The notes beneath the pieces were generated by a model. The model was given only the letters and a program-made list of their open reading frames with translations, searched no databases and was not told the origin of the DNA. From IMG/VR virus record IMGVR_UViG_3300035180_001778, positions 62,001-126,000 of that record: a DNA stretch of 64,000 nt. One strand, given 5' to 3'. Positions within the stretch are counted from its first letter, which is position 1, and each line of letters starts with the position of its first letter. Positions 239 to 32,685 of this stretch are shown here, one piece after another. A program made the position numbers and the translations under genes.

Positions 239-757
239 TCATTCGTCGAACTCGGCGTCATCGAGAAGATGGGTATAGGCGTTCTTCTCGGGTTTCGGCT
301 TGACGGCGACGTGGGCGATTCGTTGCTTGACCGTCTTGAATTGCGCGGTGATGTCGATCCGCGAGCGGCCTTTCTCGTGAACGGCCACGAGGAGGTTCCC
401 AGATTGCAGCCCCAACATGGGCGAGAAGAACACGGGCCCACCCATTCGAGCGGGGTCGCTCGCCACCCAGTCAACGTACAACCTCAAGGGTTCTTCCGTC
501 GGAGTTGCCAGAGGCCCGATGATGCGAGCGATGTACTGCAACCGGCCCAAGCTGGGCCTGGACTGCATGACCACGAACGGCCACTCCGTCTGCGGGTTGG
601 AGAGAACCGTCGCCTCTCCCTTGAGATCCGCATCGAAGCGAATCTCCTTCACCTGCCCGGAGGCTGCGAGAAGCTCCGACATGTGCGTACGCTTCAGGTC
701 GTACTTGCGGACAATCCAGTGCTGCCCATCGTGCAGAAGAAGGTCTCCGAGCTTCAT
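239..757 (-). CDS. Hypothetical protein (172 aa) with acidic C-terminal motif NAYTHLLDDAEFDE
   Basis: ORF with ATGA overlap to the upstream gene and GC3-rich codons. Confidence 0.8.
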   Translation of the reverse strand: MKLGDLLLHDGQHWIVRKYDLKRTHMSELLAASGQVKEIRFDADLKGEATVLSNPQTEWPFVVMQSRPSLGRLQYIARIIGPLATPTEEPLRLYVDWVASDPARMGGPVFFSPMLGLQSGNLLVAVHEKGRSRIDITAQFKTVKQRIAHVAVKPKPEKNAYTHLLDDAEFDE

Positions 758-1125
758 GCTTCCACCACTGCCGGAATCAGGAGGTCTTGAGGCGTGAACT
801 GCTCCTCGAACTTCTTGAGGATGGGGAACGCCGTTGCTGCGTCATCTTCGAACGACCGACGCACGTCGTAAAGCGCATTCCGGAAGGAATTCTCTATGAC
901 GTGCGTCAGGATGGCTTTTTGAGGAGGATCCGAGAGATCCCAGGTCTTGAGGTGCCCCACCCACTCGGCGTGAGCGGACTTCTCGATGTCGTCTTCCAAC
1001 CCGAGCATGCGATGGTAGGGACCGATGTCCCCCTCCTCTCGACTTCTCGGGAGGTAGACAGTCCTTCGAGCCAGACTGCGAAGAAGGCGTTGGGCGAGGT
1101 GTTGAGCGAGAAGAGCGGAGGGCAT
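754..1125 (-). CDS. Hypothetical protein (123 aa)
   Basis: ORF; GGTGTC variant of the promoter motif 10 nt upstream of ATG. Confidence 0.75.
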   Translation of the reverse strand: MPSALLAQHLAQRLLRSLARRTVYLPRSREEGDIGPYHRMLGLEDDIEKSAHAEWVGHLKTWDLSDPPQKAILTHVIENSFRNALYDVRRSFEDDAATAFPILKKFEEQFTPQDLLIPAVVEA

Positions 1126-1170
1126 CGCCTATACTGACACCGAATCCGCTCCCAAGCAGAGAGGGATCGT

Positions 1171-1965
1171 TCAGCCGCCGAAAGGACCGCCGAGTTCGAG
1201 GCCGGCATCCTTGAGGACGTCGTCCGTGCTCTTGCGCTTCACGACGGACGCCTTGGGAGTCGTGGCGGGAGCCTCGTCTTCGACGGGAGCTGCCTTCACT
1301 TCCGATTCCGCCTTCTTGTCTTCGTCCGAGGACGCCTTGACAGGCTCGACGGCAGCCTTGGGCGAGCTGCCCTTGGCGAGCTTCTGCGCGACGAGGGCAG
1401 GGGGAGCCTCGTACGAGGACACGACGCGATAGAAGCCGCGTCCCTTGGCCGGGACCTTCTCGAAGGTCTCCTTGGCCGAGGAGAGGGTGTACGAGATGTA
1501 TCCTCGCGGGTTGTCCGAGAAGGGCAACCAGCCCATCTCCTTCATCTCCGTGAAGAGGGTGTCCGCGTTCACGATGCGATCCCCAGCCGTGACTGCCATG
1601 GCGTCGTGCAGCTTGGGACGATCCCCATTGGCCACCTGGCGACGGCCTTCCGCGGCTCGGCTCATGCCCGCCACCTTGGGCTTCGGGTCTGCGGCGGACT
1701 CGTCCTTGGCCTTCGGCTTGCGACCCGGCTTGCCCTTCGGCTTCACAGGTTCCGGAGTGCTCGTGGCATCCTCCGTTGCAGCCTTCGGCTTGCGGCCGGG
1801 CTTGCCCTTGGGGGCCGCTGCGGGAGCTGCTGAGGCCGACGATCCGTCACCGAAGATTTCGACGAACTTCGTCACCTTGTCCGCGGCCTTCACCGCTTCG
1901 GCCTGCTTCGTGGCAACTTCGGCCTGAAGCTCGGATAGGGTGCTCTCGTACGTGATCTTGTTCAT
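1171..1965 (-). CDS. Histone-H1-like/AT-hook-like DNA-binding protein with central winged-helix-like domain
   Basis: Lys/Ala/Pro-rich; two KGKPGRKPK repeats; globular segment LHDAM..GWLP..YISYTLS..RGFYRV. Confidence 0.6.
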   Translation of the reverse strand: MNKITYESTLSELQAEVATKQAEAVKAADKVTKFVEIFGDGSSASAAPAAAPKGKPGRKPKAATEDATSTPEPVKPKGKPGRKPKAKDESAADPKPKVAGMSRAAEGRRQVANGDRPKLHDAMAVTAGDRIVNADTLFTEMKEMGWLPFSDNPRGYISYTLSSAKETFEKVPAKGRGFYRVVSSYEAPPALVAQKLAKGSSPKAAVEPVKASSDEDKKAESEVKAAPVEDEAPATTPKASVVKRKSTDDVLKDAGLELGGPFGG

Positions 1966-2069
1966 ATTGGGATGATCTCCAGATGCACATGCCGTCTCTC
2001 GGTCCCTTTGGGGTATGCCGAAGACGGTAAGATGGTTCCCTGTGATAGGACCCTAACCTGGAGGATCTG

Positions 2070-2602
2070 TCAAGGATATATTTTGGGGTCGGTTCCAATT
2101 CGAGAATTCAGGACTCTGAGATGCTTTTTGGAAACGTCCTCTTCACGAACGTTTCCAAAATTGCACTTCTTGATCTGGAAACACGTTGCAACCACGCCAG
2201 GCCCAGCCTTGAGCCCTTCACAACGTTCGCAGATAGCTGTCCCAAAATTCAGACGGAACCGTAGCCGAGCACCTTCCGCGAGAAGCTCGTGGTAGGCCTC
2301 AGAGAGCTTCTCAACGGCGGCAAAGACCTGGGTGGGGTCTCCGGTCGAGAAGCTCTGGAGAGCTTCGTCAGCAGGGTCTACTTCTTGGGGAACTCCCGCT
2401 CGATGTCCGCCTGGCAGATGATCCCCATCCGACGGAGAGCTTGCTCGGTCTGCCCCTTCGACACGGCCATTCGTAGACCGGGAAGATGACGGGAGTCGAT
2501 CGTCTGAGCGGAGGTGAGGACCTGCGTCATCAGCCTGTGCCACTCGATTGCGTTCTTCGGAGCCAAGGACTGCGTCTGCGTCTCCAGTAGGCGGGTCTTC
2601 AT
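2070..2602 (-). CDS. Hypothetical protein split by an apparent -1 frameshift near 2387-2390
   Basis: GC3-rich frame 2602-2378 (MKTRLLE..EREFP) joins the frame ending at 2070 (QEVDPADEAL..CERC..C..KC) if one C is added to a C4 run; 533+1 nt = 178 codons. Confidence 0.55.
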
Positions 2603-2950: not shown

Positions 2951-3216
2951 CGTCCGATCCAATCCGTCTGGAAAACCAAGATCCGCTCGTGTCCCTCAAG
3001 GCAGCGTAACCCCACCTTCCAGTAGAAGTGGGAGGCCTTTCGACGAAGGGCGTACGAGGTGGGCTCCGGTCGAGCCGCACAAGAGCAGCATGACAAGTTT
3101 TTCAGCGCTTGGACAACATCGTCGGCTCCGCCTGTCGGTTGAGCTTGACGGATATCTTCGTCCGTGAGGTCGGGGGAGTCTTCGTCCAGAGTACGGATAG
3201 ATATGTCAGGAGTCAT
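2947..3216 (-). CDS. Hypothetical protein (89 aa), possible Zn-binding (CCSC..C..H)
   Basis: 3' part of ORF 2947-3393; start placed at MTPDISI. Confidence 0.6.
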   Translation of the reverse strand: MTPDISIRTLDEDSPDLTDEDIRQAQPTGGADDVVQALKNLSCCSCAARPEPTSYALRRKASHFYWKVGLRCLEGHERILVFQTDWIGR

Positions 3217-3637
3217 CGTCGAGATCATCCTTCCCCAGAAGAGCTTTCGCCATAGCCGTCTTGAACTTGCGCGACTTGACGGGCTTGGGGATCTTGACGA
3301 TGGCATCCCTTCCTCGGGGGTCCGGCTGCAACCCTTTACTCTTCTCGAAGAGTTCGTACGCCGCGTCAAAGAGATAAGGCAACAGCCCGCCAATCAACTT
3401 GAGGGCTGTAACATGCCCCAACTCATAGGCATGCACCCTTTGTTCATCCCGCCGATACTGTATGTGCTTTTCACCGTTGACCCAACGATACTCCCCCACC
3501 TCGTAGGCCAAGCAAATCGTCGATTTGTATTCGATGTGTTGGACCCCCGGCAGCCTGCGCCGGCTGAATACCTTCCATTCGGTCGTGCGGGGCTTGTCCT
3601 TGGGGAGGGGTTTCCCCTTTTTCTTGGCTGGGGTCAT
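3206..3637 (-). CDS. Hypothetical basic protein with acidic tail (143 aa)
   Basis: ATG at 3637 overlaps the DUF1848 stop. Confidence 0.7.
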   Translation of the reverse strand: MTPAKKKGKPLPKDKPRTTEWKVFSRRRLPGVQHIEYKSTICLAYEVGEYRWVNGEKHIQYRRDEQRVHAYELGHVTALKLIGGLLPYLFDAAYELFEKSKGLQPDPRGRDAIVKIPKPVKSRKFKTAMAKALLGKDDLDDDS

Positions 3638-4476: not shown

Positions 4477-4511
4477 CGTCGTCTCTACACGCGTCGAGGG
4501 TCTCGGATCAA

Positions 4512-5024: not shown

Positions 5025-5051
5025 GTCCCCCAAGTACACCAACTGGAGGGA

Positions 5052-7102: not shown

Positions 7103-7129
7103 ACTGAGGGGAGGGCACAAGAGAAAATG

Positions 7130-7480: not shown

Positions 7481-7503
7481 GCCCACACCCCCCTACAAGA
7501 GGA

Positions 7504-9032: not shown

Positions 9033-9329
9033 TCACTCGTCGATCGAGTCGCCAACGTAGAAGGCGATACCCCTGGCGCTGGGGTCCCAGCCTCGCTTCA
9101 GCGCCTTCGGGATCATCTCCGCAACCAGGCGAGGCGTGATGACCCTGTAGTAGGACAGGCGGCGAAAAAGAACCCGACCGGGTTTCGGCGTCACCTCCTG
9201 GACGATCAGGACCAGCTCTTTCTGGTCTCGCTCCTCAAAGCGATGGGAAATCTTCACGAGGTAGCGGTAAGACTTCCCATCGACCACGATAGGGCGGCTT
9301 CCTTTTCGAGGGATGCCCATCTCGATCAC
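9033..9329 (-). CDS. Small hypothetical protein, paralog of 8760-9029
   Basis: PRKGSRPIVVDGKSYRYLVK..TPRLV..AL..GWDP. Confidence 0.75.
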   Translation of the reverse strand: MIEMGIPRKGSRPIVVDGKSYRYLVKISHRFEERDQKELVLIVQEVTPKPGRVLFRRLSYYRVITPRLVAEMIPKALKRGWDPSARGIAFYVGDSIDE

Positions 9330-10576
9330 CCCACCGCTTCTGCCGGGACATCCCGGCGGAGGATGACAGCTTGACCCTTCCCCATGGCCGCTTCCTCCGT
9401 GATCCGGATCGAGACGATCGTGGGGTCGCTCGGCGAGATGTAGGCGTACGGAGCCAGGATGCTCTCGACGACGGACCGAAGCCCGCGGGCTCCCGTCGGC
9501 CGCTTCTTGGCCTCCTTGGCGATGTGCCGGAGGGCAGCATCATCGAACTGGAGATCGATGCGGTCCATGTGGAAGAGGGCCTTGACCTGCTTGATGATGG
9601 CGTTGCGGGGCTCCGTGAGGATCTTCAACATCTCCTCTTCCGTCAGCTCGATCACCGTCGTGAGCACCGGGACGCGCCCCATCAGCTCGGGGATGATCCC
9701 GAAGCTGAGAATGTCGTCTTCCTTCACCTCCAGGTAGGTCTCCGTCTTGGAGAGCTTCTTCTTGTCCTCCGCTCCGAATCCAAGGCTCGACTTGTGGTTC
9801 ACCCGCTGCGAGATGATGTCCTCGATTCCGGCGAAGGACCCGGCGCAGATGAAGAGCACGTTGGTGGTGTCGAACGGGTCCGATTCCCCACCTGACGTGA
9901 CCATCTTGCCCTGCCCGCGGGGCACGTTGATCTTGTTCCCTTCGAGGAGCTTGAGGAGGCTCTGCTGAACGCCTTCCCCCGTGACGTCGCGATAGCCGGT
10001 CGACCCGCGGCCCGACTTCCTCGCCAGCTTGTCGAACTCGTCGATGAAAATGATCCCCCACTGAGCACGCTCGATGTCCCCGTTGGCATCCGCGATGAGC
10101 CCCTGAATCAAGCTCTCGACGTCATCCCCGACGTAGCCCGCTTGCGTCAGCTTGGTCGCGTCCGCGTTGAACATGGGCACGCCCAACATCCGGGCGAGGG
10201 TTCGAGCGATCTCGGTCTTGCCGCAACCGCTCGGGCCGATGACCATCATGTTGCTCTTCTGGATCTCGACCCCAAGATCCAGGTTTTGACGGACGGCATC
10301 CCGCCGCTTGTAGTGGTTGTAGACGGCCACCGCCATGTCCACCTTCGCCCGTTCCTGCCCGATGACGTACTGATCCAGGAAGGCCCGGATTTCCATGGGC
10401 TTGCGAAGGACTTCCTTCTTGTCGGCGTTCTTCTTCAGCTCCGCTTCGCCGAAGGCTCGACCGATCTGCCCCACACACTTGTCACAGATGAGGGCGCCCC
10501 CCTCAACCCCCGCGAGGGCTTTCACCTCATTGCGGGGTTTTCCACAGAACGAGCACTTGGCGATGTTTTGGGCCAT
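9326..10576 (-). CDS. clpX: ATP-dependent Clp protease ATP-binding subunit ClpX
   Basis: N-terminal C4 zinc finger (CSFC..CDKC), Walker A GPSGCGKT, GYVG pore loop, IFIDEFDK, RDVTGEGVQQSLLK, LGF loop, GARGLRS. Confidence 0.95.
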   Translation of the reverse strand: MAQNIAKCSFCGKPRNEVKALAGVEGGALICDKCVGQIGRAFGEAELKKNADKKEVLRKPMEIRAFLDQYVIGQERAKVDMAVAVYNHYKRRDAVRQNLDLGVEIQKSNMMVIGPSGCGKTEIARTLARMLGVPMFNADATKLTQAGYVGDDVESLIQGLIADANGDIERAQWGIIFIDEFDKLARKSGRGSTGYRDVTGEGVQQSLLKLLEGNKINVPRGQGKMVTSGGESDPFDTTNVLFICAGSFAGIEDIISQRVNHKSSLGFGAEDKKKLSKTETYLEVKEDDILSFGIIPELMGRVPVLTTVIELTEEEMLKILTEPRNAIIKQVKALFHMDRIDLQFDDAALRHIAKEAKKRPTGARGLRSVVESILAPYAYISPSDPTIVSIRITEEAAMGKGQAVILRRDVPAEAVG

Positions 10577-10586
10577 GTTGATCTAG

Positions 10587-10592
10587 TACACC
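10587..10592 (-). promoter_or_regulatory. GGTGTA element 10 nt upstream of clpX ATG
   Basis: TACACC on + at 10587-10592, ATG at 10576. Confidence 0.6.
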
Positions 10593-10593
10593 A

Positions 10594-10623
10594 CAAAAGC
10601 CCAAAATGCCGAATCATTTTGGG
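10594..10623 (-). terminator. Intrinsic terminator
   Basis: 9-bp stem CCCAAAATG/CATTTTGGG with a 6-nt loop, followed on - by CTTTTGT, just after the 10625 stop. Confidence 0.65.
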
Positions 10624-16517: not shown

Positions 16518-16985
16518 CTACCCGATATCCTCTTCCTCGTCATTCTGATTGAGGATCGCCGCCACATTTGAAGGGTGATACTTCAAGCAGGCCGCACAGA
16601 GAAGCGTACCCCCAAAAGGACGGACTTCTGCCGCTCGGGCACTGCACTGGCTTTTTCGATGCCCTGCCGTACAGGTGACGCACAGGCATCGAACCTTCGG
16701 GATCTTCTGCCCGTTAGTGTAGAAAGAGAGGTCTTGGAAGGCGAGGCCGATGTTCCGGTAGCTGTGCAAGAGCTGTTGCGCCGCCGAGTCGTAGGACTCG
16801 GTGCTGCCCGTGCTGCAAATCTGGAAGAGCACCGAGTTCTGCTCGTTCTCTGCGAACATGACAATTCGCACGATGTAGTGATCCCCGGCAGAATTGAGGA
16901 TCGCCCCCACGCGGGCCGGCTCGTTGAGGACCTGCTTGTAGAAGTGGATCAACTCCTGAACCGCGGAGGGGTCTTTCTCAGCCAT
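16518..16985 (-). CDS. Hypothetical protein with Cys-rich C-terminus (CLCVTC..C..CAAC)
   Basis: GGTGTA-N9-ATG at 16985. Confidence 0.7.
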   Translation of the reverse strand: MAEKDPSAVQELIHFYKQVLNEPARVGAILNSAGDHYIVRIVMFAENEQNSVLFQICSTGSTESYDSAAQQLLHSYRNIGLAFQDLSFYTNGQKIPKVRCLCVTCTAGHRKSQCSARAAEVRPFGGTLLCAACLKYHPSNVAAILNQNDEEEDIG

Positions 16986-17745: not shown

Positions 17746-17944
17746 TGGAGAATCCCCCCTTCGAGGGCCTCTTGATGGTGTCGAGAGCCTCTTCGGGGAA
17801 GCTATGCGTGACCACATTGGCCCCGTCGAACCAGACGCATTTGAAATAAGGGGGCCTCACGTCGGAGGGGGAGGAGGCCCCCTTATCCACCACGGTCATC
17901 TCGGGACCGCCGGACTTGAGCTGAACCACATCACCGATCTTCAT
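17735..17944 (-). CDS. YodC/DUF2158-family small protein
   Basis: MKIGDVVQLKSGGPEMTV..CVWFDG..FPEEAL. Confidence 0.85.
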   Translation of the reverse strand: MKIGDVVQLKSGGPEMTVVDKGASSPSDVRPPYFKCVWFDGANVVTHSFPEEALDTIKRPSKGGFSSES

Positions 17945-18498
17945 AGGTCGTCTCCAAGTTTGTCCCACAGGGTAGGACGTGCGTTTATGACTTCTACAGT
18001 ATCTCCAATCCTCACAACCCCCTTGAGGTTGAACAGGAGAAGGTTTCTGGCGGCTGGCGTGTCTTGCACGTTATCAGACATGATGTACCTCCCGAGAGTT
18101 TCGGGGGTAGCCACAGCCAATTCACAGCCCTTGTAGGCTATGCGACTCCCCTGGTAGTCGAGGTCCTGCGATTCAAACCAGGTTGCAAGAGTGTCTTCAG
18201 GGACCCGAGCATTCGACAATGCCGCTCTCCACAGCATCTCAATCGCGCGATCCTCAAGTATCCTATCAAAGATCGCGACGGGCTCGCACAAGACACGACG
18301 AGCCCTGTCCTTGACTTCCCCTTCCATGATGAGAGGGTATCCGTGAGCCGGAGACTCCCCCAGCCGATAGTACAACCCTGGGTCCAAGTCGAAGTACGCA
18401 GGGACCCCCATGGGGAGAAGTTCAGGAAGGAAGCAGTCGAGAGCCTGCATCGCCCAGAGACCTACACCGCGAATTTGAGATTCAAGTTTACGGGCCAC
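17941..18498 (-). CDS. Hypothetical protein with tail RPTLWDKLGDDL (185 aa)
   Basis: ORF with ATGA overlap to the downstream gene. Confidence 0.65.
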   Translation of the reverse strand: MARKLESQIRGVGLWAMQALDCFLPELLPMGVPAYFDLDPGLYYRLGESPAHGYPLIMEGEVKDRARRVLCEPVAIFDRILEDRAIEMLWRAALSNARVPEDTLATWFESQDLDYQGSRIAYKGCELAVATPETLGRYIMSDNVQDTPAARNLLLFNLKGVVRIGDTVEVINARPTLWDKLGDDL

Positions 18499-18804: not shown

Positions 18805-19665
18805 TCAAGTACTCCTGTAGTTCTTTTGGTAGTTGCCCGCGTAAGAGGGCGTCTTCTTGTGACACGAAATGCAGAGCGTTCGACCGTTGGTCAAGTCCCA
18901 GAGGGCGGGACAGTTGAACGCATCTTCGAGGGTCTTGATACGATGCTCGTCGAGGAGTCCCGCAAGAGGTTTAATGTGGTCCGCCTGTAGTTGACCCCCA
19001 ACTTGACCACATCCCTGGCAAGTATAGGCGTCCCTCTTGAAGACATCCTTTCGCCATCGGATAGCCGGTTCGGAGTTCCGAATCAGAGCTGAGAGGCGAG
19101 TTTTCCCGCCCTTCCAGTTGGACCCCTTCTCCCCTAGAAAACGACCTCGGTTGGCTTGAGCTATTTTCTGCTTGATCTCGGAGCTATGCTCACGCCCAAA
19201 GAAGGGATTCTTCTCCCCCACTCGTTGGGAGGCGCTCTCCGAGAGAGCTTGGCGAACCTCCAGTCGTTGCATTGCAGCTTTTTGAGCTGCCACAAAGTCT
19301 GGTGTGTGTCGTATAGAATTCAGCCTTGTGTGTGCGGCTTCCTTCACCTCTTCTGTATGCGTTCTCCCATACATGGGATTTCGGATCCCCGAAGTTGAGG
19401 CACTTCGGCGGGCCTTTACCTCGGGATCCTTATTTGTGACTTGAAGGGTCTCTGAGGTTTTCCGCCGGGTCGCGTCTGACTTCGTCTTCCCGTGCATGGG
19501 GTTTTTGTCCCCAGAGAGCGCCTCGGATTTCGTTCGCCTTGGAATTCCGTAGCGCGCCATGTGGTAGCGGATCGTGCTTGCGGACTCACCACAAAGAGAA
19601 GCGATCTGCCGAAGGGACAGCAGATCGCCAAGGTACTTCTGTCGGAGGAACTCTTCAGTTACCAC
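18805..19665 (-). mobile_element. Free-standing HNH endonuclease with NUMOD3-like repeats and N-terminal HTH
   Basis: Repeated NP(M/F)(H/Y/F)G(K/R)..S/T motifs; RDAYTCQGCG..ADHIKP..NGRTLCISCH. Confidence 0.85.
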
Positions 19666-19689
19666 GTCCAGGGCGTAGCACAGTGAACA

Positions 19690-20817
19690 TCAGACTGCAA
19701 CTTTGAAGTTGATGGCCGGGTGCGGATTGTATCCTTCCAAGCGGAAGAGACCCATGATTTCCTCTGTAGTGACCGAGGGATCCATCAGGCGTTCGATATC
19801 GCTGAGATCCTTGATGCTGTCATCGATGATGAGACGAGGAAGAGGACGAGGCTCTCTGGTAAGTTGCTCGCGAGCCCCAGGGGTGTGGTCGTATTCGGCC
19901 ATAGACCCATCGGGCTTGGCACAGTAGATGTGCATGTCGACCACGGAATGCCCAAAAATCCCAGGCTTGATCCCCGTAAACCTGCTGAAAAGCTCGATGA
20001 GAAGAGCGTAGCTGGCAAGGTTGTACGGTGCGCCAAGCATTACATCCAGCGATCTTTGGGTCAAATGAAGACAGAGGCGACGCGGGTCGTCCCCCACAGG
20101 AGGATTCTTGAAGACATCCCCCCCACGCGCTCCGTTGAGAATGACCTGGCAGTCAGGGCACCACGCCTCCCTGTACTTCATCCCTTCCCCGTGCGGAAGA
20201 ACCCGTCGGCCGTCCTTGTAGTTGCCGCACACGGGGTCCTCTCCCCTGTTGTGCCCGTAATGCACGTACCTCGGCGTCGGGTCCTCGTTCTGCACGTTGA
20301 ACACGTAGAGGCAGTGGCAGGGCGGGAGCTTGCTCGTCTGAGCGTTCTGGGGAGCCCAAGCCGAGACGACCATCCGCCGGCTCATGGGGTTCTTGCGCAT
20401 CTCGGCGAGCACCCAGGCGATCTGGTCGTTGAAGGTTGCCCAGACGCCCTGGGGGAGCTGAAAGCCGCCAGGGGTGTTTTCGAACATCGTCTGATTGTAT
20501 GTGTGAACCGGGAAGTTGCGCCAGAAGTTCCCATAGGCGCTCGGGACCTTGCCCGTGACGGGGTCGGCCCATGCGTCCCAGAACTTGCACCCGTGGCGCT
20601 TGAGGATCGCGATGTCCGTCTGGCCCGATAGGAACCACAACATTTCAACAACGATATGAACCCAGTTGACCTTTTTCGTCGTGAGAAGGGGGAAGCCCTC
20701 ACTCAAGTCGACCTCGTAGTAATACCCAAATGTGCTCAACGTATCCACACCAGTACGGTTTTCCTTCCTGGTCCCGTTGCTGAGCACATGGTTCACCGCG
20801 TCGAGGTATTGCTTCAC
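19690..20817 (-). CDS. thyA: Thymidylate synthase with a 70-aa insertion
   Basis: NRTGVDT, FPLLTTKK, EMLWFLSG, LPPCH, QRSLD..LGAPYN, DMHIY; GTG at 20817 with GTGA overlap. Confidence 0.95.
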   Translation of the reverse strand: MKQYLDAVNHVLSNGTRKENRTGVDTLSTFGYYYEVDLSEGFPLLTTKKVNWVHIVVEMLWFLSGQTDIAILKRHGCKFWDAWADPVTGKVPSAYGNFWRNFPVHTYNQTMFENTPGGFQLPQGVWATFNDQIAWVLAEMRKNPMSRRMVVSAWAPQNAQTSKLPPCHCLYVFNVQNEDPTPRYVHYGHNRGEDPVCGNYKDGRRVLPHGEGMKYREAWCPDCQVILNGARGGDVFKNPPVGDDPRRLCLHLTQRSLDVMLGAPYNLASYALLIELFSRFTGIKPGIFGHSVVDMHIYCAKPDGSMAEYDHTPGAREQLTREPRPLPRLIIDDSIKDLSDIERLMDPSVTTEEIMGLFRLEGYNPHPAINFKVAV

Positions 20818-20984
20818 GATTCCATTCTTTCGCGTTCGTGAGGGCACATTCCGTAGAATCCGCGTGCCATGTTGCAGTTGTGGCAGAGAACCCGGAATCC
20901 TCCCGGGAGCCCTTGCCAGTAATTGAAAGAAGATCCACTTCGGACCTTGTCTTTCTTCCTTTGCTGGTTCCGGCGTCTTCTCAT
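20814..20984 (-). pseudogene. C-terminal remnant of a small HNH-type endonuclease (56 aa)
   Basis: MRRRR..GLPGGFRVLCHNCNMARGFYGMCPH; lacks the N-terminal Cys and DH half; below the 60-aa cut-off of the ORF track. Confidence 0.55.
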
Positions 20985-21008
20985 CCGGTGCGTCTACACC
21001 GGATGAGA
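20979..21008. repeat. 12-bp perfect inverted repeat enclosing a GGTGTA promoter motif
   Basis: TCTCATCCGGTG-cgtcta-CACCGGATGAGA. Confidence 0.8.
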
Positions 21009-21009
21009 C

Positions 21010-21234
21010 TCAGTATTCTCCGGGAGGAAGCTGAACGAGTGGTTCAGGCTCGGACAGGTTGTTGACCTGGCGAACCTCAACCCGAGCTTCCCTGAGACAG
21101 GCAAGGAACCCATCCAGGTCTTCCAGTTGAGCGTTGAAGGCGTTCATGCCAGGTTCGAGGAGCAAGAGGTGCTCCGGAAGCGGCACCTCTTCCACAGCCC
21201 AGACAACGAACGAGTAAAAGCCGCCGGTATTCAT
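21010..21234 (-). CDS. Hypothetical protein (74 aa)
   Basis: ATG 21234 with ATGA overlap. Confidence 0.65.
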   Translation of the reverse strand: MNTGGFYSFVVWAVEEVPLPEHLLLLEPGMNAFNAQLEDLDGFLACLREARVEVRQVNNLSEPEPLVQLPPGEY

Positions 21235-22415
21235 CGGACGATCTGAACCTCGACGGGAAGGTCTGTCAACATCATGCCCTTGACGTGACGCCAATCGACC
21301 CAGAGTGTGTACTCGAAGGTAGCCACCACATCCCAGCGATCGTGAACCTCGCGAGCCTCGATTGTGAACGAGTCCGGGTGGATGACGATGACCCCCGCGG
21401 GTCCCTCGATCTCAGTCAGATTCCCCCCCTCAACAGGCATGATAAACGCCCGTTGTTGAAGGGGCCCGAATTGACTTCGGATAACGTCTTTTTGATGGGG
21501 ACTCGCCAACCAAAAAGAGTCCTCCGAATATCCTTCCAGGGGGATCGCAAAGACAGGGTCCAAGTATGATATCTTCTTGGAGTTTCTTCCTTGTGCAACC
21601 ACCGAAAGCGTTCGAGCGATCTCTGCCACCCACTGAGCGGCGATTCGAGCCGTGATGGCCGTCGTCTGATGGAAGTTGAGGTTGATGGTTGTCGGATCGG
21701 CGATGTTGGATCGTCCCGACGCAACCCCGATGCTCCGAACCAGGGGTGTGAGCTTGGATTCTTCCGGATCTGTGTCCCGCAGCTCGAAGCGAGCCAAGAA
21801 CGCTCCCATGTTCCCCCGGACGCGGTTGGGAATCAAGGACGGGAGCTGCTCCCGGATATCTTCGACGATCGTCTTCCTCCCCCGTTTCGTGATGGGAAGG
21901 AAGCGCGGGTCGTCTTCGACGTGGGTCCCCTTGGCCGCAAGACGTCGATAGGTGTCTCGCAGGACGTTCGTCTCCCGAGCTTCATCGAAGACCCATTGGA
22001 CCAGGAAGCCTTCGAGAGCGGGCCGAAGACGACGGAGCGGGGTAGACATCCCCCCGCTCTCACGAGGCACGTCAGGAGGCTGCCAGATGTCCTCCTCCGT
22101 GACCTTGTAGATGGCACGCCCCGTCGTTGACGAGATGATGAGCATCCCGTCGCCGAGCTGGAGGTACTCATCGGCGAGGTAGGCCGCAGCCGCCTGGATC
22201 TCTGCGTTGTTGCCTTCGACATGGTCGAAGAGCACCTCAGCAAGGTCCGAGGCAAACCGAGATGAGTCTTGCTTCTCGTCTCGGGCTCTGCGGAAGAGCT
22301 GTTGAAGGGCAGGGTTGCGTTGGATCTCTTGCCGAGCGGCGAGAAGATCCCCCGAGGCCGGACAAGCGAGTGTCCGGACCTCGGGGATCAGCGGGACCAA
22401 AGAAGAGCTGGGCAT
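21231..22415 (-). CDS. Hypothetical protein (394 aa)
   Basis: Long ORF starting 1 nt after the AAA stop. Confidence 0.8.
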   Translation of the reverse strand: MPSSSLVPLIPEVRTLACPASGDLLAARQEIQRNPALQQLFRRARDEKQDSSRFASDLAEVLFDHVEGNNAEIQAAAAYLADEYLQLGDGMLIISSTTGRAIYKVTEEDIWQPPDVPRESGGMSTPLRRLRPALEGFLVQWVFDEARETNVLRDTYRRLAAKGTHVEDDPRFLPITKRGRKTIVEDIREQLPSLIPNRVRGNMGAFLARFELRDTDPEESKLTPLVRSIGVASGRSNIADPTTINLNFHQTTAITARIAAQWVAEIARTLSVVAQGRNSKKISYLDPVFAIPLEGYSEDSFWLASPHQKDVIRSQFGPLQQRAFIMPVEGGNLTEIEGPAGVIVIHPDSFTIEAREVHDRWDVVATFEYTLWVDWRHVKGMMLTDLPVEVQIVR

Positions 22416-22416: not shown

Positions 22417-23991
22417 TCACTCGACGAGCTTGAAGCTGCTTCCCTTGCTCGGGGCCGAAGCCAGGCGAGCCTTGATCCCTTCGTTGGCTTCCGTGTCGAA
22501 GCCAACCCACTCGACCAGCTCGCGGATCTCGTCGACCATCGTCTTGAGGATCCGGGGCTTCTTCACCGCGATGTCCAGAAGGATGGTCTCGTCGAGCTTC
22601 TTGCTTCGAGCCTTGAAGCTCTTCCGCATACCCGCGCCGACCGCCTGCTCGATCTCACGACCGACCATGCCCTTGCAAGCATCGGACAGAGCGGCGAGCT
22701 GGTAGTCACTCGGGTTCTGCCCCGCCTTGCGGAGGTGGATCCGGAGGATCTCGATCCGCTCTTCCTCGCTCGGGATGTCGAAGAAGAACCGCTCGTCCAT
22801 ACGGTTGACGAACTCGATGGGGAGCGTCTTCAACGAGTTCGCCGTGAGGGCGAGGCAGATCGGAGACGTGGTCTCCTGGAGCCAGGTCGAGAGGATACCG
22901 ATCGTGCGGCTCGTCGTTCCTGCATCGGAGGCCGCCGAAGATGCCCCGCCGCCGAGGCTCTTCTCGGCCTCATCGATCCACACCACACAGGGAGCGATGG
23001 ACTCGATGTGCCGGATGGCCTTGTAGACGTTGGCTTCGGACTGGCCGACGTTGGCCGACCGGAGCTTGCCCATTTCGAGCTGGACGACCGGCATGCCCCA
23101 CTCACGAGCCATCGCCTTCGAGGCGAGCGACTTGCCACAGCCCCAGACGCCCACGAGGAGGACACCCTTCGGGGGCTTGAGCCCGAAGGCCCGCCCTTCC
23201 TCCGACCAGGAGTCCTTCGTTTCGATCGCCCACTCCTTGAAGCGATGGTTGCCGCCGAGCTGATCGAAGGACACGTTGTCGACGTCGAGAAGCTGGAGAA
23301 GGTCCGTCTTCTTGAGATGGTTCCGGCGATACTTCGTGATGTGCGCCGGGTCGATCCGCTTCGGAGCGGACTCGTCCTTCTTGGTGGCCACGATCGACTT
23401 GGCCACGGCCATATCGATCTGGTAGCTGTTCATCCCAGCGAAGAGCTGCGCACAGTTGGGCGGGGGCTCGACTCCGGGGAGGTGCTTGCAGGCCGCCTCG
23501 ACCGTCGACATGATCTCTTCCGACGTCAGCCCGGTGTCCTGGATGACCTCGACGTAGGGTTCGAGGCAGGCCGGGATCTGCTTGCGGGTCCCGACGAAGA
23601 TCAGGATCTTGAGGGTGCGGATGTCCTGGTGGACCTGGTGAATGATGTTCATGAACCGGCGGTTCACATGAGCATCGTTGAGCCAACGCTCCGGGTCCGT
23701 GAAGACGTAGAAGTTGCGCTCGTCCTTGGGGTCATCCTTGTAGATGTGCTCCAAAGCACTGTGAATGTCCGCCTGCTCCCGATTGACCGCGTGCTGCTTC
23801 GAGGTCCAATCCGTGATCAGGTTCTTGAGCGTCACCAACCCGAGGGTTGCGTTGAACACCCAGCACCGATCGGCGTGCTTCTTGAGGGTGTCCCGCAGCT
23901 TCACGAGGAACCGATCTTCCTCGTCGGTGACGTAGTAAATCACGCGGCTCAGGCTGCGAAGGTGGAAGACGAGTTCTTCGTGGGATGACAT
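22417..23991 (-). CDS. Ycf46-like AAA+ ATPase (degenerate N-terminal plus active C-terminal ATPase domain)
   Basis: YYVTDEEDR N-terminus, PKGVLLVGVWGCGKS, VVWIDEAEK, LTAN, RMDERFFFDIP. Confidence 0.85.
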   Translation of the reverse strand: MSSHEELVFHLRSLSRVIYYVTDEEDRFLVKLRDTLKKHADRCWVFNATLGLVTLKNLITDWTSKQHAVNREQADIHSALEHIYKDDPKDERNFYVFTDPERWLNDAHVNRRFMNIIHQVHQDIRTLKILIFVGTRKQIPACLEPYVEVIQDTGLTSEEIMSTVEAACKHLPGVEPPPNCAQLFAGMNSYQIDMAVAKSIVATKKDESAPKRIDPAHITKYRRNHLKKTDLLQLLDVDNVSFDQLGGNHRFKEWAIETKDSWSEEGRAFGLKPPKGVLLVGVWGCGKSLASKAMAREWGMPVVQLEMGKLRSANVGQSEANVYKAIRHIESIAPCVVWIDEAEKSLGGGASSAASDAGTTSRTIGILSTWLQETTSPICLALTANSLKTLPIEFVNRMDERFFFDIPSEEERIEILRIHLRKAGQNPSDYQLAALSDACKGMVGREIEQAVGAGMRKSFKARSKKLDETILLDIAVKKPRILKTMVDEIRELVEWVGFDTEANEGIKARLASAPSKGSSFKLVE

Positions 23992-24457: not shown

Positions 24458-24496
24458 GTTCTGGGATTCCTCTCGAAAGGGTACTTCTGGTGAGGC

Positions 24497-25278: not shown

Positions 25279-25318
25279 GAGTGAGGATAATACCCGAACG
25301 TTTCAGTATATGCCAGGA

Positions 25319-28605: not shown

Positions 28606-29216
28606 GCCCGTTCCCTCTGGCCGATCTTGTCGAGCACGAGCCGGATGGTCTCCTTGGCCTTGAGCGGGAGCACCCGACGATCGTCGAGAGAGCCGTAGAG
28701 CCGATCGAGGATCGTCCCGAGGACCAGATAGGCCTTCATGTCGAAGAGTTCCTTGGCGGCGAGGAGGCGGCGTTCGCAGATCCCGAGAAGGCTGTGAACC
28801 TCAGCGTCTTGAGCCAGAGCTTCTTCGTCTTCCCCGTGAGCTTCCGGCGGAGGACCTTCAGGCGCGGTGAGCCCGTTGTCCCGCTCGATCATCGCGAGGA
28901 GCTGGGTGAACTTGCCCTCGAAGCCCTCGAACTTCTTGTAGAGCGCGATGCAGTCCCAGCGCTCCTGGCACACGAAGCACCACGCGTGAGAGGGGCCGCG
29001 GTTCGACTCCGGGTGATACCGAACGGAGGGCTTGTTGTCTCGCCCGTGGAAGGGGCAGGCGAACTGCTCCTCGCGAGCACCACCGTTCCGAAGGCTCACC
29101 CCGTTCCGTCGGAGCACGTCATAGGCCGTCACCTGGCGGTGAATAGCCTCGATGCGAGCCTGGATCCATCGTCGGAAGACTTCCTTCCGCTCGTGGTCTT
29201 GGGGTTCAAATGCCAT
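28590..29216 (-). CDS. CHC2 zinc-finger protein (primase-type zinc-binding domain without TOPRIM)
   Basis: CPFHGRDNKPS..AWCFVCQ..WDCI. Confidence 0.8.
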   Translation of the reverse strand: MAFEPQDHERKEVFRRWIQARIEAIHRQVTAYDVLRRNGVSLRNGGAREEQFACPFHGRDNKPSVRYHPESNRGPSHAWCFVCQERWDCIALYKKFEGFEGKFTQLLAMIERDNGLTAPEGPPPEAHGEDEEALAQDAEVHSLLGICERRLLAAKELFDMKAYLVLGTILDRLYGSLDDRRVLPLKAKETIRLVLDKIGQRERACPDV

Positions 29217-29376
29217 CGTCGTCATCCTCCAAAAGGTGAGTCCAAAAGACCGGGAGGTTCGCTCGTTCTCGTTGCTTCTCCTGAACGAGAAGCGCGAACA
29301 TCTCATAGACCTTCAAGGTCGCAGGTCGGAGCCAGGCCCAATCCGCCTCCCAATCGTCAGATGTGCGTTCGTTCAC
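29206..29376 (-). CDS. Small protein with tail VFWTHLLEDDDDGI (56 aa)
   Basis: GTG 29376 overlaps the upstream TGA. Confidence 0.6.
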   Translation of the reverse strand: MNERTSDDWEADWAWLRPATLKVYEMFALLVQEKQRERANLPVFWTHLLEDDDDGI

Positions 29377-29603
29377 AGGTCGTCCTCCAGGTAATACCAC
29401 ACTGTCTTATGGGTCGGAATCGCACAAGACAACGCATACCCATGTCGAGTCATGGGCTCCAGGTCTTCCGGCTCCAGGTCCAAAAGGGCCATGGCCGTCT
29501 GTTCTTTCCCCTCTTGAGACAGATGAGGGAAGAGATTATGCACCACCCGCACAACCAGGAGCGCGTGAACCCGAAACTTTTCTTCCGTCTCGATTTGGGG
29601 CAT
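29373..29603 (-). CDS. Small protein with tail TVWYYLEDDL (76 aa)
   Basis: Starts 1 nt after the helicase stop. Confidence 0.7.
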   Translation of the reverse strand: MPQIETEEKFRVHALLVVRVVHNLFPHLSQEGKEQTAMALLDLEPEDLEPMTRHGYALSCAIPTHKTVWYYLEDDL

Positions 29604-29604
29604 C

Positions 29605-31068
29605 TCACACGTTGAACATCTCGTCGAGCACTTGCTTGTGCTCCTCGACGCTCATCCCCTTGCCCTGGTACATATCCATGTTGTAGATCCGCTTCGAGCT
29701 GAAGTGGACCGACGCGAGGAAGGGCTCGAAGATCGGGTTGTCCCGATTCTTGAGGTTGCAGAACAGGGTGGTGCCGTTCGCCCGATGGTTCTCATCCAGG
29801 TAGGTTGTCGTCAGCACATCGGCCGACTTCTCGACCTGGTTGGCGTAGGCCACGGCGGACATCTTGTATTTGCCCTCGTTCTTGGACGCCTCGTCCTTGC
29901 CTTGCCGGTTGATCTGGAAGAGCATGAGGACAGGGATCCGCTCCCCGTGATTGAAGTGCAGAGCGAGACGCTTCGCATCCCGAACGACAGAGTTCAGCTC
30001 GACGCCGTAATCCTTGGACCTCTTGGTCTTGCGGGCCTCGACCTCTTGCCCGTGGTCGATGACGATCAGCCCCACTTCCATCTGCTTGTGGAGAAGCTCG
30101 CACTCCAGGCGAATGTCATCCATGGTCACCTCCCGGTCAGGGGAGATGATCTCGCAGTGGCAGTAGTCCGGGTTGTTGGCGAAGTCGTCAACAACCCTCT
30201 CGTAGAAGGCTTCCTCCGCGGGGGATAGCTCCCCATCCCGGACCTTCCGGTAATCGAGAGGCACGTACCCCATGGCCCGCCACTTCATGTTGGCCGAGTG
30301 GAGCACGTAGAACTGGAGGCGGATCTGCTCGTAGGGCATTTCCAGCGACCAGTAGACGATGTTCGTCCGATACCGGGTGACGAGGTTGTAACACCAGTTG
30401 AGCGAGAACGTGGTCTTCAGCTCGCCGGGGAAGGCCGCGTGAACCCACAGCTCTCCGCGCTTGATCCCGTGGGTGTTCTTGTCGATCTCGTTGAGCCCGC
30501 AGAACTTCCCCCAGGTCTTCTCCTTGTTGACCTTGGCGTCCTGGTATTGATCGAGGATGGCTTGGCCATCCTTCCGGATGTCCCCCGAGGTCCTCGCGTT
30601 GTACTCCGGGATGATCAGGTCGTGAGACTTCGAGGTGAAATGCACGAGAGCATCTCGAACCCCGTGCTTCCGGATCTTCTCGCGCCCCTCGACGATCTCC
30701 AAACCGCGGGTGACGATCTCGTGCGTCTCCTTGAGGAGGGCGATCGTCTTGTTCGTGTTCTGTTGCTCCAGGATCGTTTGGAGCAGGGCGGCGAAGTTGG
30801 TTCGGACGTAGGCCGGCGAAGCCTCGATGTCCGGGATGCGCTCCTGGATCTCGACGTCGTCCATGCGGACGAAATAGTCCCGGATTGTCTGGACAGCGGG
30901 GATCTCCAACCGCTGTTGGAAGTACGACTTGACGTACTCGAAGATTTTCTCGTCGTCGGGACGATTCCAGCCGATCTGAGCGGCAATGAGCCGCTGGAGG
31001 TTCTGCGTCAGGTGCTCTTGGGGTGTCTGCCCATCAAAATCGATGATGGATCGAAGTAGGCGCTTCAT
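29605..31068 (-). CDS. dnaB: DnaB-like (SF4) replicative helicase
   Basis: RGELWVHAAFPGELKTT, SLEM, LIVIDH, MLFQINRQG, EKSADV, KNRD. Confidence 0.88.
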   Translation of the reverse strand: MKRLLRSIIDFDGQTPQEHLTQNLQRLIAAQIGWNRPDDEKIFEYVKSYFQQRLEIPAVQTIRDYFVRMDDVEIQERIPDIEASPAYVRTNFAALLQTILEQQNTNKTIALLKETHEIVTRGLEIVEGREKIRKHGVRDALVHFTSKSHDLIIPEYNARTSGDIRKDGQAILDQYQDAKVNKEKTWGKFCGLNEIDKNTHGIKRGELWVHAAFPGELKTTFSLNWCYNLVTRYRTNIVYWSLEMPYEQIRLQFYVLHSANMKWRAMGYVPLDYRKVRDGELSPAEEAFYERVVDDFANNPDYCHCEIISPDREVTMDDIRLECELLHKQMEVGLIVIDHGQEVEARKTKRSKDYGVELNSVVRDAKRLALHFNHGERIPVLMLFQINRQGKDEASKNEGKYKMSAVAYANQVEKSADVLTTTYLDENHRANGTTLFCNLKNRDNPIFEPFLASVHFSSKRIYNMDMYQGKGMSVEEHKQVLDEMFNV

Positions 31069-31958
31069 CCGAGCGGTCCCCCTCCCCCGCCGCCATTCCC
31101 GAACTTCTTCGGCTTGAACTTCGACTTGTAGCCGCCGTTATCCCCCAAAGCCCCGTCTGAATTGTTGCTGGGGTAGCTCCGAGCTTCGAAACGAGGCTTC
31201 GGGGCTGCTTCCCAGGTCTTCTCCGTCACGATCTGTGTCTGTGGCGCAGAGTCCATATCCACGTCAACAGGCCCCGAAGGAACGTAGAATCCTTGAGGTG
31301 CTTCTTTCGGCCGATGCTTGTTCGTCAAGTCCATGATCGTGAATCTCTTTTCGATGTACTCAGCCACGTTCTCATCGTAGGAGAAGTGACCGGGACCGAA
31401 AAAGCTATCTGGAGTCTCGTTGATCCATGTAGCCTTTGAGGCAGCTTCACGAAGCATGAGAGCTTCCTTGAGAATCCCGGGCATGGCTTTATTGGGGTAC
31501 CCCAATTTGCCAATACGGAGGATCACAAGGTCGACATCCGGCCCCAAGATGTCGGTCAACGAGTTGAACGTCGGGGCCTCATCACGCTTGCTTTTGGAAC
31601 GAGCCTTGTAGCTCTCATCTCCGACGTAAACGATCTTGAGTCGCTCGTCGGTCAGGACTCGGAAAGAGAAGAAGAGCCCTTTCCCAACCAGAGCGCATTT
31701 TAGATGAGGGAGAAGGTCTTCCCATGCCCCCTTGAGGAAGAGGTTCTTGGCGGTCAGGTCGGTCTTGGGGTCCTTGTCAACGCCTCCCATCTCGAACAGA
31801 GGGCTCGACGTGAGGGAAGGGGCGAGAGCGATCTCTGCCCCAAGGTGTTCCTTCATCGCTCGGGCGAACGCGCAGATGCACTGGCGGACCGTGAGGTCGT
31901 CCACTTCGATCCGCCCCGTCCCCCCACACTTGGAGCAGACCTTTTTCTCGTCAGTCAT
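31065..31958 (-). CDS. DnaC/IstB-like helicase-loader homologue with degenerate ATPase motifs
   Basis: N-terminal CSKC..QCIC; no GKT; VDLVILRIG in place of Walker B; directly upstream of dnaB. Confidence 0.5.
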   Translation of the reverse strand: MTDEKKVCSKCGGTGRIEVDDLTVRQCICAFARAMKEHLGAEIALAPSLTSSPLFEMGGVDKDPKTDLTAKNLFLKGAWEDLLPHLKCALVGKGLFFSFRVLTDERLKIVYVGDESYKARSKSKRDEAPTFNSLTDILGPDVDLVILRIGKLGYPNKAMPGILKEALMLREAASKATWINETPDSFFGPGHFSYDENVAEYIEKRFTIMDLTNKHRPKEAPQGFYVPSGPVDVDMDSAPQTQIVTEKTWEAAPKPRFEARSYPSNNSDGALGDNGGYKSKFKPKKFGNGGGGGGPLG

Positions 31959-31977
31959 TCGCTTCGTCTCTACACCG

Positions 31978-32685
31978 CTAAATGTCCGACTCGAAGTCCA
32001 GGATGTCCCACGACGTCAGGCGTCCGTAGGTCCTGGGGGTCTCTTCCACAGGAGGGGCCAACGCCACAAATGGATTCGCATCAGGGTTCTCTTGCCCCAC
32101 CCTCATCTCCCCATTCTCTCGAAGAACGTAGTCGACGGGCACTTGGGGCTGGGGCCCATTCTCGACACGTACCGGAAGTGCTCGTTGCTCTTGTGCCTGA
32201 GCCAAGAGGGTTTCTTCTTGGCTTGCTACTCTATAATTACGTAAAATCATCGAGTAATTGACGCCATAGGATTCCCACCTCCCTCCTTCTTGAGGGAGGG
32301 ATATCAGCATCACTTCAGAGTTGTCGATCTGCGTGATTCTTCGGAGGGAATTCCCCGTGTCCCCTCCGAAGTTGTCCGTAGGTAGACGGAACACCCAGGA
32401 GTTCCGCCGTACGAAACTCAACTGTTCGGCCGTCCCAATGTAGTTGAACGACGAGAAATCAGAGAGCATACCCTGTGTAGGCACCCACACCTTCTCGAAC
32501 TCTTCTTGGAAGAGAGTCCCACACAATAGTTGGGACTCACCCACATGAAGAACCTCTACCACTCTCGTGTAGGTATATTCTCGTACCGCACCGTCATCTG
32601 TGGCGCGGTAGTCTTGGGTCCACCGCGTGCCCACGAGAAGTTGGGGGTTGGCTCGAAAGGAAGCACCGAGGTCGGAGGGAACCAT
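31978..32685 (-). CDS. Hypothetical protein with tail TSWDILDFESDI (235 aa)
   Basis: GGTGTA-N10-ATG; lower GC. Confidence 0.7.
   Translation of the reverse strand: MVPSDLGASFRANPQLLVGTRWTQDYRATDDGAVREYTYTRVVEVLHVGESQLLCGTLFQEEFEKVWVPTQGMLSDFSSFNYIGTAEQLSFVRRNSWVFRLPTDNFGGDTGNSLRRITQIDNSEVMLISLPQEGGRWESYGVNYSMILRNYRVASQEETLLAQAQEQRALPVRVENGPQPQVPVDYVLRENGEMRVGQENPDANPFVALAPPVEETPRTYGRLTSWDILDFESDI

Follow-up and report, generated by a model that had tools for sequence, protein, structure and literature searches.

About 40 otherwise unrelated, fast-evolving proteins of a 350-kb phage (350,469 bp, IMG/VR virus record), and dozens more in its relatives, end in the same short peptide, a predicted capped helix with Trp and Leu followed by acidic residues, which is likely an address label for one conserved partner. 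The tail was first noticed in a window of 64,000 nucleotides (positions 62,001 to 126,000 of the record), where the sequence-only reading listed five strong and two weak examples. This observation is confirmed and is much larger than initially described: all seven tails translate as listed from the minus strand, and genome-wide about 39 of 460 proteins end in a Pro/Lys-rich linker, followed by P-T-x-W-E-x-L-L and an acidic run. Only the start codons are uncertain, as codon usage prefers 31978–32142 (instead of 31978–32685) and 3206–3637 for two of the seven genes, which does not affect the tails. The proposed interpretation, a common docking or degradation tag for a hub such as the phage ClpX, the Ycf46-like AAA ATPase or the host RNA polymerase, is supported in part: the evidence strongly favors a common docking tag on unrelated proteins, but none of the named hubs is established.

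Features of the window discussed in the text (window coordinates; all on the minus strand)
Position	Strand	Feature	Details
239..757	-	Carrier, 172 aa	All-beta body, helix, Pro/Lys linker, tail helix, acidic end (tail codons about 239–286); the only carrier conserved across the clade
3206..3637	-	Carrier, weak subtype	T-A-M-A-K-A-L-L, then acidic residues; same Phe/Met-x-K-A-L-L subtype as three other carriers, genome 30451–30924, 38732–39211 and 342809–343495
9326..10576	-	Phage ClpX, candidate partner	N-terminal C4 zinc domain, GYVG pore loop, LGF loop; class-2 promoter 10 nt before the ATG
16518..16985	-	Degenerate or doubtful carrier	Acidic end ...DIG, no aromatic residue, no anchor found
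17941..18498	-	Carrier, 185 aa	Tail R-P-T-L-W-D-K-L-G-D-D-L, kept in the 81–100% relatives L211 and L212
21231..22400	-	Second predicted HK97-fold (capsid/encapsulin-like) protein, 389 aa, candidate receptor	140-aa N-terminal extension
22417..23991	-	AAA ATPase ("Ycf46-like," phrog_8638), candidate partner or loader	GGTGTA 10 nt before the ATG at 23991; directly upstream of the HK97-fold gene in 22 of 22 loci
29206..29376	-	Carrier, 56 aa	Directly downstream of DnaB; absent from the 54% relative; in a genome whose DnaB is 98% identical, the slot holds a non-matching ORF that still ends in a tag
29373..29603	-	Carrier, 76 aa	Only 53% identical in the genome whose DnaB is 98% identical, yet the tail is kept
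31978..32142	-	Carrier	ORF open up to 32685, start uncertain; absent from the 54% relative

Enrichment of the tail among protein C-termini

In order to validate the observation, we compared the tails with shuffled tails, as the sequence-only reading had proposed, and with internal controls. Its own pattern, [TNV]-x-[WY]-x-x-L, occurs in 13 of 455 tails, whereas shuffled tails give 3.0 and internal pseudo-tails 2.9 expected occurrences. A broader rule, fixed before counting (an aromatic residue, L/I/M at +3 or +4, at least two acidic residues in the next five, no K/R after, and 2–10 residues to the end), is satisfied by 31 of 455 tails, against 6.1 ± 2.35 in shuffled tails (maximum 16 in 2000 shuffles) and 5.0 expected from internal windows. 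In a six-frame control, the rule hits 31 of 454 called ORFs and 15 of 4618 uncalled ORFs, and five of those 15 are plainly genes missed by our caller, one of them at 17941–18498; our own gene calls cover 83% of the genome. A de novo gapped-triplet search places W...L..D (11 observed, 0.21 expected, p 8e-16 among 49,079 patterns), T.W..L and PT.W at the top, and the result survives the removal of paralogs.

The curated list used below contains 39 carriers. The recognized element is, however, not sharply defined, as the distance from the helix to the C-terminus varies from 0 to about 12 residues, and two proteins end right after W-E-Q-L with no acidic part. AlphaFold2 predicts the tail of the 172-aa carrier (pLDDT 81.5) as a helix at residues 160–167 following a low-confidence linker, and the linker is 2.6-fold enriched in Pro.

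The possibility that the tail has no common partner, being a generic solubility or autoinhibitory appendage or a product of paralogy, of a DNA element or of chance, is very unlikely. Acidic C-termini are common in phage proteins, and the neutral loose rule has a high background of about 10 per genome, but the position-specific conservation of Pro, Thr, Trp, Glu and Leu-Leu lies far above the shuffled and internal controls, and the motif drifts in concert by lineage. Paralogy is rejected, since there is one homologous pair among the 39 carriers of this genome (G000), none among 20 in the clade genome G006, and two among 28 in G001, the complete relative with about 54% core identity. By contrast, the enriched C-terminus of phage G, considered as a cultured model, belongs to a 35-member tandem paralog family and nothing remains after de-replication, showing that paralogy is detected when present. 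An explanation by a DNA element or a Shine–Dalgarno sequence is also rejected: synonymous codons vary at the conserved Thr, Ala, Glu, Leu and Asp columns (e.g., for Thr, ACG 8, ACC 8, ACT 3, ACA 3), and most acidic codons are GAC, not GGAGG. Finally, we considered a phospho-Thr/FHA reading of T-x-x-E; a Ser/Thr kinase is encoded, but no FHA domain was found in three genomes, and a helix N-capping box explains the pattern more simply.

Modularity, turnover and lineage-specific variants

The tail is conserved across the clade, while its carriers, with one exception, are not. Only three of 39 carriers have a homolog in G001, against 156 of 460 for all genes, but G001 has its own set of tagged proteins: a PSSM trained on G000 finds 23 tails of at least 10 bits there, against 1.3 expected, although the acidic part is often missing, and the conserved part is the Trp/Leu helix rather than the acidic tip. 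The consensus is P-T-A-W-E-A-L-L-D-D-D. In G006, "RF.R" occurs in 20 tails against 0.94 expected (p 5e-20).

Five clade genomes use the tag in lineage-specific flavors, of a Trp type and an Arg-Phe type. Trp is found in 42 of 69 tails in three lineages and in none of 36 in two others (p 3e-11), whereas Arg before the aromatic residue is found in one of 69 and 17 of 36 tails, respectively (p 8e-9). Two ortholog families, those of window 239–757 and genome 14009–14614, switch flavor with their lineage; orthologs of the former in five lineages keep the tail. Retention was observed in orthologs at 28–39% identity. An ArdC-like carrier is the only one of 120 homologs with the tail, so the tail is a portable module.

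The carriers are mostly tiny orphans. Pfam and PHROGs searches assigned a domain to only three of 27 G000 carriers, and the domain-bearing carriers are nucleic-acid proteins (ArdC-N, a Top1-type zinc ribbon and an RlaP nucleotidyltransferase), although one G001 carrier is a radical SAM enzyme. For the 172-aa carrier, Foldseek returned nothing at or below 1e-3; its N-terminal 52 residues are Tudor/KOW-like at Z about 7, which is only a lead.

Carriers are scattered over 0–95 kb and 233–343 kb of the genome and avoid the structural block (0 of 122 genes, P 3e-6). They sit in "GGTGTA" leaderless promoter units together with ClpX, PolA and the AAA ATPase, favoring class-2 units 22:8, against 103:142 for other genes (p 0.0016).

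Candidate partners of the tail

Taking all this into account, the tail is likely a docking or targeting peptide for one conserved hub. In this view, it is a portable short linear motif consisting of a Pro/Lys-rich flexible linker, a short amphipathic helix with an N-capping box (Pro at N', Thr as N-cap, Glu/Asp at +3) whose Trp/Phe and Leu-Leu form one face, and an acidic run often ending in Leu, Ile or Phe; it would be appended to dozens of unrelated, rapidly replaced accessory proteins transcribed in the "middle" class, and would tether them to the partner through a hydrophobic groove with a basic rim. The enrichment, the modularity, the selection at the peptide level, the conservation across the clade and the concerted drift of the motif are demonstrated by the data, while the existence of a single partner, its identity, and any binding or shell assembly are our inference; no partner was identified, and no computational analysis showed binding.

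An HK97-fold shell, either the virion capsid or the second capsid-like protein, ranks first among the candidates, though only as a tentative possibility. The AAA ATPase gains interest only because it is always coupled to the latter protein, which the sequence-only reading did not see. This protein has no Pfam, PHROG or PDB sequence hit, and tblastn against 50,697 phage records gave no match, so that the assignment is at the fold level only: for the AlphaFold2 model (pLDDT 75), Foldseek finds encapsulin 3dkt at E 4.6e-5 and 28 hits at or below 1e-3, VIA structural alignment gives Z 8–10 to HK97-fold capsids and encapsulins (phi29 MCP Z 10.0, HK97 prohead Z 9.0), and an atlas search returns major capsid clusters. 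We had also considered this protein as a divergent clamp, which is rejected by the predicted HK97 fold. On net charge, neither its N-terminal part (-3 to -10) nor the MCP at genome 190469–191350 (-3) is obviously complementary to an acidic tail, and the charge comparison of candidate partners was uninformative. If the shell reading is true, a widespread clade of huge phages would use one C-terminal label to load 20–40 interchangeable, fast-evolving accessory proteins, among them an ArdC-like anti-restriction protein, into the virion head, for delivery with the DNA into the next cell, or into a separate encapsulin-like compartment; either would be a phage-encoded, programmable protein-packaging system.

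Docking on the zinc-binding N-domain or the pore of the phage ClpX is possible but doubtful. Carriers would then be substrates unfolded or removed on schedule, or SspB-like adaptors delivering host targets to phage ClpX working with host ClpP. The phage protein is a bona fide ClpX (Pfam; E 1e-107 to E. coli ClpX 8e91), it is present in all clade genomes tested and shares the promoter class of the carriers, the 172-aa carrier lies within 10 kb of clpX in four lineages, and the net charge of the zinc-binding domain is +5 in G000. However, this charge is not conserved, and an alignment of ClpX N-domains across lineages shows no clear co-variation with tail flavor. Complex prediction with two copies of ClpX residues 1–62 and the last 37 residues of the 56-aa carrier gave no answer (score 0.01), which is evidence neither for nor against binding. 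A plain ssrA-type ClpXP degron is unlikely, since the ends are acidic rather than non-polar, acidic C-termini are poor tags for E. coli ClpX and block it, and six-frame Pfam searches found no ClpP in G000, in G001 or in the clade genome G002. Phage G, in turn, has clpP-clpX but no such tail once paralogs are removed.

A host hub, for example RNA polymerase, a chaperone or a protease, is about as doubtful as ClpX; the lineage flavors would then track different hosts. GC content ranges from 53 to 63% among clade members with different flavors, carriers such as the ArdC-like one look like host-takeover or anti-defense genes, and the Tudor-like domain of the 172-aa carrier resembles the RNAP-binding domains of CarD and UvrD, again at Z about 7 only. 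On the other hand, carriers avoid the promoter class that looks sigma-70-like and early, where classical host-takeover genes would be expected.

A replisome or nucleic-acid hub (PolA, DnaB, primase or another DNA enzyme), to which the tail would recruit carriers in the manner of the acidic C-terminal tails of SSB, T7 gp2.5 and T7 gp4, is less likely still. It would agree with the nucleic-acid domains of the carriers noted above, with the location of three carriers inside the DnaB–primase–PolA operon, and with the absence of a canonical SSB in six-frame Pfam searches. The last residue is hydrophobic in 19 of 39 carriers, where an acidic run ends in Leu, Ile or Phe, against 135 of 460 for all proteins, but many tails end in Asp, Glu or Gly. 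About 39 mostly tiny orphan carriers with high turnover are many for one replisome site, and both the radical SAM carrier of G001 and the conservation of the Trp/Leu helix rather than the acidic tip speak against this reading.

Comparison with known terminal peptides

Terminal docking peptides are known for single proteins or small sets of them (SSB, the T7 tails, SspB, encapsulin cargo), whereas here one label marks 5–9% of a phage proteome. We found no description of the motif in the searched literature. It is conserved across a very large uncultured clade, whose capsid protein is at least 90% identical in more than 585 IMG/VR contigs, while the labeled proteins turn over quickly, as anti-defense genes typically do. 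The label gives a sequence-only way to pick out a functional class among the orphan genes of huge phages, and, being a peptide of about 15 residues, an experimental handle on a central hub of infection; if this hub is a capsid-fold shell, it would be a ready-made modular protein-loading tag.

Clamp-binding motifs (T4 gp43, gp33, gp55; bacterial QL[SD]LF; PIP box) likewise bring many unrelated proteins to one hub through a short, often C-terminal motif, and clamp-loader subunits are encoded here, but the tails have no Gln-Leu-x-Leu-Phe-like or PIP-like pattern, and no beta-clamp was detected in six-frame Pfam searches.

In encapsulin Family 1 systems, a short C-terminal peptide after a flexible linker sits on unrelated proteins and addresses them to the lumen of an HK97-fold shell (PMC8346489). 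The tail shares this placement on otherwise unrelated proteins, and the best Foldseek matches of the additional predicted HK97-fold protein are encapsulins, although by VIA alignment the fold matches phage capsids equally well. Differences are that the consensus bears no resemblance to the known Gly-Ser-Leu-type targeting peptides (e.g., TVGSL), that about 40 carriers are dispersed instead of one to four operon-linked cargos, with only one lying 3–4 kb downstream of the putative shell gene in several lineages, and that the element is a phage, not a cell. The C-terminal capsid-targeting tail of the HK97 maturation protease and the T4 capsid-targeting sequence show that a terminal peptide suffices to load a protein into a prohead, but these signals are known for one or a few late proteins, and the T4 signal is N-terminal and cleaved, whereas here there are dozens of non-late accessory proteins.

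The XB tail of SspB, which binds the ClpX zinc-binding domain, has the same architecture of body, flexible linker and C-terminal peptide, and a ClpX with that domain is encoded here; however, XB is basic or hydrophobic and binds as a strand, while this tail is acidic and predicted to be helical, and there is one adaptor in bacteria against about 40 carriers here. In the acidic C-terminal tails of E. coli SSB, T7 gp2.5 and T7 gp4, an acidic run ends in a hydrophobic residue and docks in a basic-rimmed pocket, and in T7 the tail is shared by unrelated proteins; those tails lack the capped Trp/Leu helix, the best-conserved part here, and only two or three proteins share them.

Occurrence and form of the shared C-terminal tail

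The analyzed genome (hereafter G000) is a single-contig virus record of 350,469 bp with 59.7% GC, estimated by CheckV to be about 73% complete; the window is its bases 62001-126000. Genes were called with our own codon-usage model, yielding 455 genes plus five rescued ones, which cover 83% of the genome; since the tails are fixed by stop codons, uncertainty about start codons does not affect them.

All seven tails listed in the sequence-only reading are present, and thus its observation is confirmed; moreover, listing of every C-terminus in the genome greatly extended it. When aligned on the first Leu, 37 of the 39 curated carriers share a common form, that is, a Pro/Lys-rich stretch followed by P-T-A-W-E-x-L-L and then by two to four acidic residues, often ending in Leu, Ile, or Phe. 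Two registers are observed, T-x-W-x-x-L and T-W-x-x-x-L. In addition, two proteins end exactly at T-x-W-E-Q-L, with the stop codon where the acidic run normally begins, and these may be truncated or minimal versions of the tag.

The pattern suggested by the sequence-only reading, [TNV]-x-[WY]-x-x-L, is found in 13 tails against about three expected. A broader rule, fixed before counting, yields 31 tails, compared with 6.1 +/- 2.35 in shuffled tails (maximum 16 in 2000 shuffles) and 5.0 predicted from internal windows. In all six frames, this rule hits 6.8% of called ORFs and 0.3% of uncalled ORFs, a third of the latter being missed genes. An unbiased gapped-triplet scan ranks W...L..D, L.DD, T.W..L, and PT.W first, with p down to 8e-16 over 49,079 patterns, and this result is unchanged after collapsing paralogues.

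The tail is not a product of paralogy, as all-against-all BLASTP with the last 16–18 residues removed finds one related pair among the 39 carriers. The scan does detect paralogue-derived tails where they exist: in Bacillus phage G (NC_023719), a tandem family of about 35 paralogues of about 200 aa shares a C-terminal Y-W-K-E-N-D-R-Y-L-A-K-I-L, which served as a useful positive control. Neither is the tail a DNA element or a ribosome-binding site, since all synonymous codons are used at the conserved Thr, Ala, Glu, Leu, and Asp columns.

Thr at position 0 and Glu/Asp at +3 are constant in both registers and are preceded by Pro, which is the classical helix N-capping box. An AF2 model based on the five-sequence alignment of the 172-aa carrier (pLDDT 81.5) predicts an all-beta body, a low-confidence linker, and a helix over the motif. 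The linker is 2.6-fold enriched in Pro and depleted in Asp.

Carriers, their turnover, and lineage-specific forms of the tail

The carriers have a median length of 138 aa, and 24 of the 27 tested have no Pfam domain. The three carriers with domains are an ArdC-N plus M78 anti-restriction-like protein, a protein with a Top1-type zinc ribbon, and an RlaP nucleotidyltransferase; a carrier from the relative G001 is a radical SAM enzyme. None of the 122 genes between 97.8 and 233 kb, the virion block, is a carrier (P 3e-6).

The relative G001 has a complete genome of 437 kb, with core proteins about 54% identical to those of G000. It shares 156 of the 460 genes, but only three of the 39 carriers, and around DnaB it lacks all three small carriers. 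Yet G001 has its own tagged set: a PSSM trained only on G000 finds there 23 tails of at least 10 bits, against 1.3 expected, and their bodies are again unrelated. Other genes conserved in this relative encode an adenylosuccinate-synthetase homologue (possibly PurZ-like) adjacent to a Ser/Thr protein kinase, a ThiF-like E1 domain protein, a VWA-domain protein, and a GroEL homologue.

The major capsid protein (MCP) shows that the clade is very large, as it is 90–100% identical in more than 585 IMG/VR contigs, whereas other core proteins of the same genomes are about 50% identical, an unusual degree of constraint. It matches the solved phage G gp27 capsid protein (PDB 6wkk) at E 1.5e-62.

Three more genomes use variants of the tag: G005 has T-A-W-x-R-L-M-x-D-D-E-Y, while G006 and G007 have P-[ST]-R-F-[ED]-R followed by acidic residues and a hydrophobic end. 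In G006, RF.R occurs in 20 tails against 0.94 expected. Trp is used in 42 of 69 tails in three lineages and in 0 of 36 in the other two, while Arg before the aromatic residue occurs in one of 69 and 17 of 36, respectively.

The only carrier family conserved across the clade, that of the 172-aa protein, retains the tail in five lineages at 28–39% identity and takes on the local form, as does a second family. The region just downstream of DnaB is a hot spot of gene replacement: between genomes whose DnaB is 98% identical, the 76-aa carrier is only 53% identical but keeps its tail, while the neighboring slot holds a different ORF that still ends in a tag. Of 120 ArdC homologues, only the copy from G000 has the tail, added after the normal end.

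Taken together, these data demonstrate that the label is modular, is selected as a peptide, and drifts in concert across many proteins. This is what a single co-evolving partner predicts, although the existence of such a partner and its binding to the tail are inferred. The interpretation of the sequence-only reading is partly supported: a docking tag is right in kind, but no hub has been established. We found no prior description of the tag in the searched literature. The features discussed in this and the following sections are located as follows.

Coordinates of the features in the window, in the whole genome record, and in other genomes (L numbers are our labels for individual loci)
Sequence	Coordinates	Strand	Feature
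Window	239-757		Carrier family conserved across the clade (172 aa)
Window	21231-22400	-	Second, sequence-orphan protein with a predicted HK97 fold (389 aa)
Window	22417-23991	-	AAA ATPase
Window	10577-10600 (upstream of ClpX); 34500-35000		Examples of the leaderless promoter classes found genome-wide
Window; L001	29206-29603 compared with L001:11400-12300		Replacement hot spot downstream of DnaB
Genome	190469-191350 (L035:16469-17350)		Major capsid protein
Genome; G006	175697-176605; 296066-296563; G006 342822-343697		Accessory proteins with copied pieces of the capsid protein
Genome	19295-21417 (L029:1895-4017)		Adenylosuccinate-synthetase homologue next to Ser/Thr protein kinase
L045; G006; G007	L045:2728-5076; G006 280073-282385; G007 215753-218038		ClpX genes interrupted by an intein
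Phage G NC_023719	352-370 kb		Tandem paralogue family
Genome	294892-296046; 297712-298002		Proteins ending at T-x-W-E-Q-L
Genome	258227-258805; 261396-263321; 240297-242015		ThiF-like E1 domain protein, VWA-domain protein, and GroEL homologue

Promoter classes

Two leaderless promoter types at a fixed distance from the ATG emerged from the analysis. Class 1, TTGATC followed by 14–19 nt, TGTAG, and 8 nt to the ATG, precedes 55–60 genes, whereas class 2, GGTGTA followed by 9–11 nt to the ATG, precedes 47–66 genes, including those for ClpX, PolA, the SNF2 helicase, GroEL, and the AAA ATPase. Virion genes have Shine-Dalgarno leaders instead. This suggests three temporal classes and a host that translates leaderless mRNAs. 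Carriers sit in class-2 units in the ratio 22:8, compared with 103:142 for other non-structural genes (p 0.0016).

Candidate partners and comparison with encapsulins

ClpX of this genome is genuine, and ClpX is present throughout the clade; the ClpX genes of three relatives are interrupted by an intein (Hint/LAGLIDADG), while the copy in the window is intact. However, no ClpP is found in G000, in the complete G001, or in the genome G002, and phage G has ClpXP, encoded by an adjacent clpP-clpX pair (gp257/gp258), without such a tag. Searches for a beta clamp, SSB, or FHA domain also yielded none.

A conserved 389-aa protein of unknown function was tested as a possible clamp, but turned out to be a second HK97-fold (capsid/encapsulin-like) protein at the level of predicted structure, with a 140-aa N-terminal extension and distinct from the virion capsid protein. 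The top 28 Foldseek hits are almost all encapsulins, VIA-align gives Z 8–10 to the phi29 and HK97 capsid proteins and to encapsulins, and the atlas hits are capsid clusters. This protein has no sequence relatives in Pfam, PHROGs, PDB, or 50,697 phage records. Its gene is located in the replication module, directly downstream of the AAA ATPase gene in 22 out of 22 IMG/VR loci.

Some accessory proteins carry copied pieces of the capsid protein: one has an Acb2/Tad1 hairpin domain plus two copies of MCP 154-254, and two tag carriers contain the MCP N-arm (residues about 3-77). Against a shell as the receptor of the tail, which remains a hypothesis, the carriers are dispersed and do not belong to the late class, the peptide is unlike known targeting peptides, and the net charges are not complementary. 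Encapsulins are defined by an HK97-fold shell and by C-terminal targeting peptides on their cargo (PMC8346489), and this makes the second HK97-fold protein, or the capsid itself, an attractive candidate receptor.
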